Source of the DNA: Anaeramoeba ignava BMAN
Taxonomy: Eukaryota > Protista > Anaeramoebae
NCBI GenBank assembly: GCA_028826165.1
Contig: JAPDFW010000059.1
Coordinates: forward strand, 806,001 to 870,000
Length of the DNA stretch: 64,000 nucleotides
Direction of reading: 5' to 3'
Made by a program: the position numbers and the translations under genes. Below, piece after piece: positions 17,930 to 21,445 of this stretch. Position 1 is the first letter of the stretch. Every line of letters starts with the position of its first letter. The notes below the pieces were generated by a model that saw nothing but the letters and a program-made list of their open reading frames with translations, made no database searches and was not told the origin of the DNA.

Positions 17930-18537
17930 TCCACTTAATCCGTTTTCTTTTTCTTTTCTTTTTCTTTTTCTTTTTCTTTTCCAATCTTTTTCTTTTCTCA
18001 ATTTTTTTCTCAATTAACAAAAAAACAAATTTAAAGACAAATTAAACAAGATTTTCAAAATAAAATTTAAATAAATTCTTTTTAAACAAAATTCAAATTT
18101 AAAGACAAATTAAATAAGATTTTCAAAATAAAATTTAAAACAAAATTTAAAAATAAATTTAAATAAATTCTTTTTAAAATTTTTATTAAATTTAATTAAT
18201 TAAAAAAAGGAATATTTTCTCTTTTTTTAGATTATTTTTTTGGATCTTTTTTTCTTTTTAATTTAAATAAAAATTTTAATTAAACAAGATTTTCAAAATA
18301 AAATTTAAAACAAAATTTAAAAATAGATTTAAATATTTTCTTTTTAAAATTTTTATTAAATTTAAAAATAAAAGGAATAAATATTATTTTCTTTTTAAAA
18401 TTTTTAAATTTAACAAGATTTTCAAATAAAATTTAAACAAAAATTTAAAAATAAAAGGAACATTTTCTCTTTTTTTTAGATTATTTTTTTGGATCTTTTT
18501 TTCTTTTTTCTTTTTCTTTAAGTTTTCTTTTTTTTTT

Positions 18538-18598
18538 TTCTTTTCGGATTTTGTAACCTCGAATCCTTTCGATTTATTTACAAATCGTCATTTAGAAA
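18538..18598 (-). promoter_or_regulatory. Eukaryotic type II SECIS element in the 3' UTR of the selenoprotein gene
   Basis: The minus strand reads AUGAC-GAUUUGUAA-AUAAA-UCGAA(AGGA)UUCGA-GG-UUACAAAAUC-CGAA. This gives an AUGA/GA core, helix II (GAUUUGUAA with UUACAAAAUC), an unpaired AAA and an apical mini-stem, ~70 nt after the TAA stop. Confidence 0.88.
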
Positions 18599-18662
18599 TT
18601 GAAAAAAAAAACAAAAAGAAAAGAAAAAGAAAAAAAATAATGAAAAATAAATTTTTTTTAGA

Positions 18663-19540
18663 TTAAGGAAGTGAATCAACAATTTCATTAATTTCTGGAA
18701 AAAAATCTTTGATTGTTTTTTTAAAAATTATTCTGTTATCTGCAAAAACATTAAAAAAAGGACAATCATCACTTTTTAAAAATAAAAAAATAATATAAAA
18801 TTAGAAAGAATTTTTTTCACCTTTTGTTTTTTTTTTTTGTTTTTTTTTGGATTGATTGATTGAAAAAAAAAATTTAATCAAAAATTATTTACGTTTCATA
18901 TTTTCGGTTAAGTTTAACATCATAAAGAAGATCTTGTAATTCATTTTTAAGAATATAAGCTTCTGAAGAATAAGATCATCCTTTTTTTAATTTAAATAAA
19001 AATCAAAAATCAAAAATTAAAAATCAAAAATCAAAAATCAAAAATTAAATTAAACCTCCACAAAATTCAATTGTAATTAAAGGAAGAGAAGGAACAGAAG
19101 GAATTTCAATATCTGGTCCGAAATCAAAATCTGAATCTGAATCTGAATCTGAATCTAATTCTAATTCTATTTTTGAATCTAAATCTATTTTTTCATCCAA
19201 TATTTGATCTATTTGTTTTTTTTTTTGAATTGAAAATTTTAAAAGATCAAATAAGAATAAAAAATAACGAAATAAAAAATGAAATAAAAAAAAATAATAA
19301 CTTTGTTTTGATTTTTGTTTGAGATTGTCTAGATTTGTTTTAATTTGTGTTTTAATATCAAAATCGATTTGATCTCCACAATTTTCTTTGAGAAAAAATA
19401 ATTAAATTAAAAAAGTAATTAAAATGAAAAAATTTAAATTAAAAATTAAATTGTTATTTACTTTTTTCAGAAGAGGAATAAATTAATTTAGGAAAGAGTA
19501 AAAGAAATAAAAAGAAAAGAAAAAAAGAAAATAAATTCAT
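18663..19540 (-). CDS. Rdx-family (SelW/SelT/SelH-like) selenoprotein, 170 aa, signal peptide plus CGGU motif (Sec107)
   Basis: Exons 19540-19462, 19385-19302, 19208-19056, 18980-18893 and 18771-18663 are all GT-AG and phase-consistent (513 nt). Translation: ...LITIEFCGG(TGA)SYSSEAYILKNELQ...PFFNVFADNRIIFKKTIKDFFPEINEIVDSLP*. SECIS downstream. Confidence 0.88.
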
Positions 19541-19627
19541 ACAATTAAAAAAATAAAACTTGAGAAAAATGAATTTAACGTTTTTTTTTTTCATTTTTTC
19601 ATTTTTTTCATTTTTTTCTTTTCAAAA

Positions 19628-21445
19628 ATGAATGATTGTTTATATTTTGGTGATAACGAAGAACCAAAACTTATCAAAAATGAACCAGAAAAAATAACAA
19701 AACCAATTCAATTTAAATTTGAAAATGAAAATGAAAATGAAAATGAAAATGAAAATGAAAAACAAATTAAACAAATTTCATCAGGTTATTTTTCAACAAT
19801 TTTCCTTTTTAAAAATGGAAAAGCAATAGAATATTTAACTGAAAATGATTCAAATCAAAATCCTGAAAAAATCCAAATTGAAGAAAATATTCAAAAAGTA
19901 ACTGTTGGTTATGATAATGAAGCTATTTTAACAAAAGAAGGAAATGTATTTGCAAAAGGAAAAGATATTAATCCAGAAAATTCAAAAGAATTTATCAATA
20001 TTTCATCATTAATTGAAGATAAAAATGATAGAATAATTCAAGATATTGTTTCCGCAACTTTTTCAATTTACTTATTAACTTCAAATCAAAATGTTTATGG
20101 AATTGGTTCAAATGAATTTGGTCAACTTGGTTTTGATTATGAAACACTTGAAAAAACAGAAAAACCAATTTTAATGATGAAAAATGTTTCTAGAATATTT
20201 TCAGGAAATTCTTCAACATCCATTTTTCTTTTAAATTCAAATCAAGAATTATTTGGATGCGGATGGAATTATTCAGGACAACTTGGATTAGGATATCCAG
20301 AATATGAAGGTTTAATCCAAAAATTAACCAAAATCCAAAATATTCCAAAAGGTAAAATAATTGATATTCAATGTGGATTTTATCATTCAATAATATTGAT
20401 TGAAAATGAAAATCAAAATGAAAATCAAAATGAAAACCAAAATCAAAATCCAAAAAGAAAACTTTATTCATGTGGAAATTATAAATTTAATGGACTTGGC
20501 AAAACTCAAAATACTTATGAATTTACTGAAATCAAATCATCTTTATTTGAAAATGATGATAATATTCTTGATTTTTCTGTTGGAAATGTTCATACTTTGA
20601 TTTTAACTTCTAATTCGAAATTAATTGGATTTGGAGATAATGAATATGGTCAATTAGGAACTGGAGATACAATAAATCAATCAATTCCAATTCAAATTGA
20701 ACTTCCTGAATTAAGATTTAATGAAAATATTTCCAATTATCATATTTATTGTGGATTTCGCAAATCATTTCTTTATTATTCTCTTCCTTCTTTTTCCAAT
20801 CTTGAAGAAGATTTGATAAAACTATTTGAAAGAAAAGAATTTTGTGATATTTCATTTAAAACCGAAAATGGAGAAATAATTTCAGCTCATAAATTAATAT
20901 TGAAATATAGATTAAATCAAAATGAAAATGAAATTGAAAAACTTCAAGAAATTATTTCAAATAAATCAATTAAAGAATCAAATCAAATATTTGAAATGAT
21001 TTATTCAAACAGAATTATAAATCCAAAATTATATTCAGAAATTAAAGAAATTATAAATTTAAATGAAAAAATTGAAGAAACAATTAAAAGAATTTATTTA
21101 AATGAAAATGAAAATGAAAATGAAAAAGATTTTATTATTGAAAGAAAAGAAAAACAATATAAATTTCCTAAATTAATATTAATAATGAGAAGTGAATTAT
21201 ATCGAGGAATGTTTTTATCTGTAACTGAAGATAAATCAAATAAAGTTACAGATTATAGTGAATTAAGTAATAAATCATTCCAAATATTTGAATATTGGAT
21301 TTATTCAAATCAAATTAAAGATGAAATTCAAATTACACAAGAAATTATTGATGAAGTTCGAATTGGAATTGATTATTTTCAATTAAATCAAACAAATCCA
21401 AATTTAATTGATTTATTAATTAACAAATTTCATAATCAAAATTAA
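19628..21445 (+). CDS. RCC1-repeat plus BTB/POZ protein, copy 1 (intronless)
   Basis: RCC1 motifs (GSNEFGQLG, CGFYHS, VGNVHTLIL..GDNEYGQLGTG); BTB-like FCDISF..ISAHKLIL and KDFIIE..RSELYRGMF. Confidence 0.9.
   Translation: MNDCLYFGDNEEPKLIKNEPEKITKPIQFKFENENENENENENEKQIKQISSGYFSTIFLFKNGKAIEYLTENDSNQNPEKIQIEENIQKVTVGYDNEAILTKEGNVFAKGKDINPENSKEFINISSLIEDKNDRIIQDIVSATFSIYLLTSNQNVYGIGSNEFGQLGFDYETLEKTEKPILMMKNVSRIFSGNSSTSIFLLNSNQELFGCGWNYSGQLGLGYPEYEGLIQKLTKIQNIPKGKIIDIQCGFYHSIILIENENQNENQNENQNQNPKRKLYSCGNYKFNGLGKTQNTYEFTEIKSSLFENDDNILDFSVGNVHTLILTSNSKLIGFGDNEYGQLGTGDTINQSIPIQIELPELRFNENISNYHIYCGFRKSFLYYSLPSFSNLEEDLIKLFERKEFCDISFKTENGEIISAHKLILKYRLNQNENEIEKLQEIISNKSIKESNQIFEMIYSNRIINPKLYSEIKEIINLNEKIEETIKRIYLNENENENEKDFIIERKEKQYKFPKLILIMRSELYRGMFLSVTEDKSNKVTDYSELSNKSFQIFEYWIYSNQIKDEIQITQEIIDEVRIGIDYFQLNQTNPNLIDLLINKFHNQN

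Follow-up and report, generated by a model that had tools for sequence, protein, structure and literature searches.

Is an in-frame TGA in a small gene of the anaerobic marine amoeba Anaeramoeba ignava BMAN a selenocysteine (Sec, U in motifs) codon, or is it removed by splicing, as in the public annotation (GenBank protein M0811_00292, here P0001)? The gene lies on the minus strand of a 64,000-nucleotide stretch of contig JAPDFW010000059.1 (positions 806,001 to 870,000; assembly GCA_028826165.1), which we call the window and to which all coordinates without another label refer. A preliminary description had joined five GT-AG exons into a 170-residue protein with a signal peptide-like N-terminus and the sequence ITIEFCGG-TGA-SY, and this frame proved accurate to the base: translated one by one, the exons sum to 513 nt (170 codons plus TAA) and all four introns run GT...AG, in very AT-rich surroundings (GC 8-22 %). 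Our analysis points to a genuine selenoprotein gene that is mis-spliced in the GenBank model and probably encodes a SelW-like oxidoreductase of the secretory pathway, a member of the Rdx family. In order of transcription, the coding parts are as follows.

19462-19540, minus strand: exon 1, with the ATG at 19540 followed by MNLFSFFLFFLFLLLFPKLIYSSSEK; hydrophobic N-terminus, a probable signal peptide; ends in phase 1; N-terminus identical to that of P0001.
19302-19385, minus strand: exon 2, a short polar segment, K-NCGDQIDFDIKTQIKTNLDNLKQKSKQ; junctions as in P0001.
19209-19301, minus strand: intron 2, an open in-frame stretch of 93 nt whose donor (GTTATT) is weak; spliced out in the public model too.
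19056-19208, minus strand: exon 3, an acidic Asp/Ser/Glu-rich low-complexity linker followed by strand beta-1, PLITIEFCG plus the first base of a Gly codon; ends ...SVPSLPLITIEFCG.
18981-19055, minus strand: intron 3, 75 nt, phase 1, immediately 5' of GA-TGA.
18893-18980, minus strand: exon 4, 88 nt, beginning GA TGA TCT TAT...; completes the Gly codon, carries the putative Sec codon and continues with SYSSEAYILKNELQDLLYDVKLNRKYE.
18976-18978, minus strand: the in-frame TGA, read as Sec (the U of CGGU), at Rdx profile position 10.
18963-18980, minus strand: 18 nt encoding Gly-Sec-Ser-Tyr-Ser-Ser in our reading and treated as intron in GenBank, with an alternative acceptor at AG 18964-18963.
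18663-18771, minus strand: exon 5, ...DDCPFFNVFADNRIIFKKTIKDFFPEINEIVDSLP; codes for the C-terminal half of the Rdx domain and ends in TAA (18665-18663).

A protein search with the stop-free frame 19383-19057 returned one entry, P0001, an A. ignava 'hypothetical protein' of 164 residues. It agrees exactly with exons 1, 2, 3 and 5 and reads ...ITIEFCG/EAYILKNE... (slashes mark splice junctions here and below), using a frame-keeping acceptor 18 nt into exon 4 that would delete the six residues around the Sec. The gene had been expected to be truncated or missed by annotation; it was not missed, and the expectation holds in that the TGA is lost, through what we read as mis-splicing. The acceptor upstream of the TGA is not out of place, as A-rich acceptors are normal in this gene: the others accepted are of AAG or TAG type, and the public model itself uses two A-rich AAG ones. 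Moreover, the position of this acceptor, AG/GA-TGA, is conserved in four genes of the genome, namely the window gene and the Rdx genes at loci L002, L003 and L012 (described below), all of which have a phase-1 intron in the Gly codon right before the Sec codon (preceded by FCGG in L003 and L012). The public models of three Rdx relatives, P0002, P0003 and P0004, all lose their TGA as well, each by a different, non-homologous splice choice: P0002 omits ...VCIFLELG-U-CK, P0003 omits G-U-GIYGEFLYV and P0004 omits one whole exon plus 11 more codons. Because these non-homologous solutions surround one conserved splice site, the GenBank splice around the TGA would be best understood as stop avoidance by the gene predictor.

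Family and homologue searches used the single exons and the public 164-residue P0001 as queries. Of the pieces, exon 5 alone matched a Pfam family (Rdx positions 44-70, E = 0.022, 15.4 bits), and hhalign aligned it with a profile of four in-genome Rdx genes at E = 7.9e-4 over 30 columns. Aligned piece by piece to the L012 paralog, exon 4 scored z = 2.5 and exon 5 z = 4.5 relative to shuffles. The spacing of the motifs agrees with the family profile. CxxU stands directly after beta-1 (ITIEF-C-G-G-TGA) at profile positions 7-10; in the SelW-like gene L001, the first residue after Sec falls on profile position 11, which puts its Sec at position 10. Counting from the TGA of the window gene, residue 6 of exon 5 is expected at profile position 44, which is where Pfam aligns it, and the TGA position equals that of the Sec in L001, L002, L003 and L012. 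Only the model that contains the TGA fits the Pfam Rdx profile free of gaps; the annotated model needs a 6-residue deletion and aligns at Rdx positions 42-70 only, its N-terminal half unaligned.

The predicted structure is of the same kind. An AlphaFold2 model of P0001 residues 97-164, built from a shallow alignment and without the six skipped residues, has a predicted local distance difference test score of 80.4 and a beta-alpha-beta-beta-beta-alpha topology. Foldseek matches in the PDB listed down to rank 11, before a gap in the ranks, are all SelW-related Rdx structures (template modelling (TM) score 0.61-0.69), with 2p0g, 2fa8, 3dex, 2ojl, 2obk and 2oka in the lead and mouse SelW (2npb) at rank 24. 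For a single-sequence model from the ESM Atlas, which is independent of the AlphaFold2 alignment, the structural neighbour listed first is an Rdx cluster (TM score 0.73). Three proposals of the preliminary description are borne out by these results: membership of the Rdx family, by the exon 5 match, the in-genome profile and the SelW-related structural neighbours; a CxxU motif whose TGA occupies the Sec position of SelW-like L001; and the lack of a SelT-type insertion, the spacing to the C-terminal motif being ungapped and exons 4 and 5 containing no hydrophobic stretch. We regard the sequence evidence for Rdx membership as thin but consistent.

Recoding of the TGA would call for a selenocysteine insertion sequence (SECIS) in the 3' untranslated region, and a candidate follows the stop codon.

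18536-18599, minus strand: type II SECIS candidate, with AUGA at 18591-18588, AAA at 18575-18573, a mini-stem of 5 bp at 18572-18559 and GA at 18545-18544.

The hairpin lies 72 nt past the TAA, close to the ~70 nt claimed for it, has 12 nt between AUGA and AAA and carries one bulged A in helix 2. It gave a full-length match to the Rfam SECIS_1 model at 18.9 bits (E = 1.9 over 4227 families and 3 kb, or about 4.5e-4 for one family), near the score of the element of paralog L012 (21.1 bits). Eight reference SECIS elements from this genome (L001, L004, L008-L012 and L016) are all of type II, with AUGA-N12-AAA, usually followed by UC, in seven of the eight (L001 has N11), and the distance from stop to SECIS is 58-131 nt in the five genes measured. 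The window hairpin has the features common to most of them (AUGA-N12-AAA-UC, a mini-stem, GA then A) and a distance within their range. In a descriptor-plus-energy scan it was the best of three sites in 128 kb (-8.4 kcal/mol) and more stable than the genuine elements scored in the same way (-4.8 to -7.7 kcal/mol); block-wise dinucleotide shuffles yielded 0.05 sites per 128 kb at -8.4 kcal/mol. Folded together with its flanks by plain minimum free energy, the hairpin did no better than shuffled sequences (z = -0.1). Lineage-specific covariance models were built from the genome's own elements (R1 from 5 sequences, R2 from 8), and the model from five elements recovered three held-out ones at 34-39 bits; the window hairpin is penalized in these models for the bulged A, a C.C pair beside the core and a longer mini-stem. 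The type II SECIS claimed earlier has its canonical elements and falls short in score, and we describe the putative SECIS of this gene as present but atypical.

The machinery that such an element would need is encoded in the genome. We found a tRNA-Sec (70.3 bits; anticodon TCA according to ARAGORN), SepSecS (404 bits), SPS2 in three exons with an in-frame TGA and a SECIS detected by the lineage covariance model, and eEFSec, recognized by its two diagnostic domains PF21208 and PF21131. The top selB match was discarded as eEF1A, eEFSec sitting at another locus, and a KTI12/PSTK-family gene is present whose assignment is ambiguous. From this gene content Sec decoding is clearly in use in A. ignava, as the preliminary description had supposed (its suggested check for PSTK gave the ambiguous result just mentioned). 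The same set of components bears out its view of the TGA as recoding rather than a change of code; in-frame TGA is depleted in the window by a crude stop-codon tally. The string 'selen' is absent from the paper on the A. ignava genome. For A. pumila, a 2026 preprint gives two tRNA-Sec genes, with selenoproteins inferred, and Sec machinery has been reported in other metamonads (Monocercomonoides, Spironucleus), so Sec use in A. ignava was to be expected. For comparison, Dictyostelium discoideum has five selenoproteins, with neither Rdx nor thioredoxin reductase (TrxR) among them.

A six-frame Pfam Rdx search of the genome found four other loci, the window locus not among them, and a SECIS search of the genome found five. 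The clearest Rdx gene, at L001 (G000:C71:141838-145059; gene L001:1498-1731), is a single exon of 87 codons, SelW-like, that reads MNVHIEFCLV-TGA-NYDPEF...; its full-length Rdx match (66 bits) spans the TGA, and a SECIS lies ~115 nt after the stop. L003 (G000:C137:505846-508956) encodes MQVSITFCGG, followed by a repetitive intron of >400 nt and then AG/GA TGA GGA...; L002 (G000:C15:54170-57337) has the same AG/GA-TGA acceptor, and a search for its first exon did not find one. Both are SelW-like without a signal peptide, with SECIS elements of 39.5 bits (L003) and 26.4 bits (L002). L004 (G000:C78:149312-152506) is an Rdx gene whose first exon, MSREIKYRVCIFLELG-TGA-CK, precedes a repeat-filled intron; it has G-U-C, unlike CxxU, and a SECIS of 34.2 bits in the lineage model, and its public protein P0002 is without the Sec region.

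The nearest relative in architecture is L012 (G000:C1:508941-511998, minus strand; gene about L012:2207-1608, SECIS at L012:1550-1509), on the same contig as the window gene and ~300 kb away. Its ~105 codons read MIRFFLLLFILFLS...LSLLIEFCGG/intron/AG/GA TGA TCC..., then TGA-SDSRTARTLRETLEKEGFEVDVKKIDD/intron/..RCPTVDLLTSDGEVLFSKYKSGRYPHKEDIFEILREFLK, and its SECIS scores 21.1 bits with Rfam and 38.6 bits with the lineage model; the public protein, M0811_00167 (P0004), lacks the redox-motif exon. L012 and the window gene have in common a hydrophobic N-terminus, an 88-nt Sec exon and a following intron in phase 2 that lies three codons before a Cys-Pro. In all, the selenoprotein set comprises at least six Rdx genes, a TrxR ending in GCUG, SPS2 and others. 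Among the other loci, L009 (G000:C2:448278-451340) holds a TrxR-like open reading frame that ends GC-TGA-G (GCUG), with a long repetitive 3' region and a SECIS of 32 bits; L010 (G000:C73:330704-333765) has a SECIS of 29 bits with two U.U mismatches in helix 2, and the gene upstream of it was not identified.

A number of observations weigh against a working Sec codon in the window gene, beginning at the splice site. The TGA-removing acceptor, named beforehand as the refuting case, is present in the DNA. Its polypyrimidine tract (TTATTCTTCAG) is the better of the two, it leaves the frame intact and GenBank has adopted it; we infer use of the upstream acceptor from within-genome comparison only. 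As to the protein, exon 5 (15.4 bits) and P0001 (14.2 bits) both fall under the gathering threshold of Pfam Rdx (PF10262, 22.6 bits); hhalign found no match between exon 4 and the in-genome Rdx profile, BLASTP found no alignment of single exons to paralog L012, and beyond the motif the paralogs are only weakly similar. The alignment given to AlphaFold2 included Rdx paralogs, which may bias the fold that way, and the signal peptide was assigned by eye. A phmmer search of 1.84 billion representative proteins with P0001 returned P0001 alone, word-indexed searches with the window open reading frame, the family alignment and P0004 returned A. ignava proteins only, and six-frame genome searches with exons 4 and 5 returned the locus itself; conservation across the TGA between species is lacking because no homologue was detected outside this genome. 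The SECIS is the other soft spot: 18.9 bits lies below the Rfam gathering score of 35, and in the lineage models the hairpin reaches ~10 bits, below ~100 A/U-rich chance matches (noise floor 15-20 bits in the window), as against 38.6 bits for L012, 36.8 bits for SPS2 and 34.2 bits for L004 when these true elements were held out.

These points could be taken to mean that the public model is right, with the intron ending at AG 18964-18963, the TGA intronic and a Sec-free product of 164 residues left with one Cys at the former redox site. Such a model would draw on the classical pyrimidine tract of its acceptor, the preserved frame and the weak SECIS score in the lineage-specific models; but it would take six residues out of the fold where conservation is highest and leave the N-terminal half of the protein unalignable to Rdx. 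It would have to set aside an upstream acceptor position that is conserved in four genes, and it comes from an annotation that removes the TGA from three Rdx relatives too, at sites that are not homologous, a pattern pointing to stop avoidance. Nor would this model explain the GC island that is shaped like a SECIS and lies past the stop at the usual distance, and we think it unlikely to be correct. A decaying paralog, in which the TGA exon is spliced as we propose but the SECIS is dead, so that UGA terminates translation to give a 107-residue stub or the mRNA is degraded, strikes us as similarly improbable. It would account for a SECIS at ~10 bits where held-out true elements reach 34-39 bits, and for an orphan gene of fast-evolving, low-complexity sequence with no ortholog detected; yet the frame is kept in all five exons, an Rdx motif and a foldable domain are kept downstream of the TGA, and no canonical SECIS element is missing from the hairpin, which is also stabler than the genuine ones scored in the same scan. 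That an AT-rich stretch should offer a spliceable frame, CxxTGA and a hairpin by chance, with no real Rdx gene behind them, is hard to credit. Each score alone is sub-threshold (15 bits for Pfam, 19 bits for Rfam), and AT-rich DNA folds easily and matches A/U-rich models, but the gene was annotated independently with the same four other junctions, and motif, intron phase, exon length, profile spacing, fold and SECIS position are in mutual agreement. A genuine but mis-annotated selenoprotein gene remains the reading that we prefer.

As we picture it, the five-exon gene would give rise to a 170-residue selenoprotein whose N-terminal signal peptide, judged from its sequence, may route it into the secretory pathway. 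Ahead of the Rdx domain lie about 100 residues, among them an N-terminal stretch of 14 that are all Leu and Phe but for one Ser; after the signal peptide would come an acidic Asp/Ser/Glu-rich linker of ~70 residues and then the C-terminal SelW-like, thioredoxin-like Rdx domain, with a Cys-Gly-Gly-Sec active site after the first beta strand. The UGA at 18978-18976 would be recoded to Sec by the hairpin of the 3' untranslated region together with tRNA-Sec and eEFSec, as the parts present suggest. By analogy with SelW and SelT, the product may work as a thiol/selenol oxidoreductase, passing through a selenenylsulfide in its cycle.

Mammalian SelW has the redox motif CGAU and is a cytosolic protein of ~87 residues without a signal peptide. 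The window protein resembles SelW (SELENOW, PF10262) in having its redox motif, here CGGU, after the first beta strand; in its predicted compact beta-alpha-beta-beta-beta-alpha domain without insertion and a C-terminal motif of the type F-x-V...I-F-K-K...F-P; and in its structural neighbours, mouse SelW (2npb) and bacterial SelW-related structures. It differs in the hydrophobic N-terminus and the ~70-residue acidic linker before the domain, in an extra Cys-Pro otherwise seen only in the signal-peptide paralog L012, and in falling under the Pfam cut-off piece by piece. SelT combines the Rdx fold and CxxU with targeting to the endoplasmic reticulum by an N-terminal signal sequence, and a hydrophobic insertion of ~60 residues splits its Rdx domain. 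Fold, CxxU and a (predicted) signal sequence are likenesses between the window protein and SelT (SELENOT), whereas the insertion is lacking: between Sec and the C-terminal motif the window protein follows the profile without a gap. Mammalian SelM reads CGGU, and like SelM and Sep15 (PF08806) the window protein would pair a signal peptide with a thioredoxin-like domain. That family was considered for its CGGU and rejected, as no piece nor P0001 matched PF08806 (E up to 10) and the structural neighbours and C-terminal motif are of Rdx type.

Within the genome the closest comparison is with the CGGU Rdx genes (L003 and L012, L002 by its Sec exon, and the proteins P0003 and P0004), which have a SECIS 58-131 nt past the stop and mis-splicing in GenBank, as the window gene appears to. 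Unlike these, the window gene has a SECIS of 18.9 bits (Rfam) or 10 bits (lineage model) as against 26-39 bits (for L012, 21 bits with Rfam and 38.6 bits with the lineage model), and its identity to them outside the motifs is low. The predicted signal peptide sets it apart from L002 and L003, and the acidic linker from L012, which has none in its ~105 residues in total.

If the selenoprotein reading is right, the public gene model would be corrected and, together with its relatives, the gene would show that the A. ignava annotation systematically removes Sec codons through invented splice sites. Selenoprotein mis-annotation is a familiar problem; here, because the annotation splices out Sec codons, the selenoproteome of a recently described anaerobic lineage, a set rich for an anaerobe, would be hidden in the databases. 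The conserved intron right before the Sec codon offers a practical marker for re-annotating the Rdx family. Less ordinary is the apparent arrangement of a SelW-type domain, lacking the SelT insertion, downstream of a signal peptide and an acidic linker; we found no published description of it, and it would provide a testable handle on Rdx function outside the cytosol. Going further, the window gene and L012 might form Anaeramoeba's own small family of signal-peptide SelW-like selenoproteins that act outside the cytosol, a proposal that we put forward as a long shot. The sites would be the secretory pathway, the cell surface or the lumen of the symbiosome that houses sulfate-reducing symbionts, where a selenol would withstand sulfide-rich, strongly reducing surroundings better than a thiol. 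If true, this would be an extracytoplasmic role for which the SelW branch of the Rdx family has no known precedent.

Some minor features of the locus concern its 5' part. Retention of intron 2 would add a Phe/Leu-rich segment of 31 residues that resembles a membrane span. An upstream in-frame ATG at 19594 would extend the hydrophobic N-terminus to give a possible signal anchor. Further upstream, a divergent RCC1-BTB open reading frame starts at 19628, only 33-87 nt off, so that one very short promoter region serves both genes.

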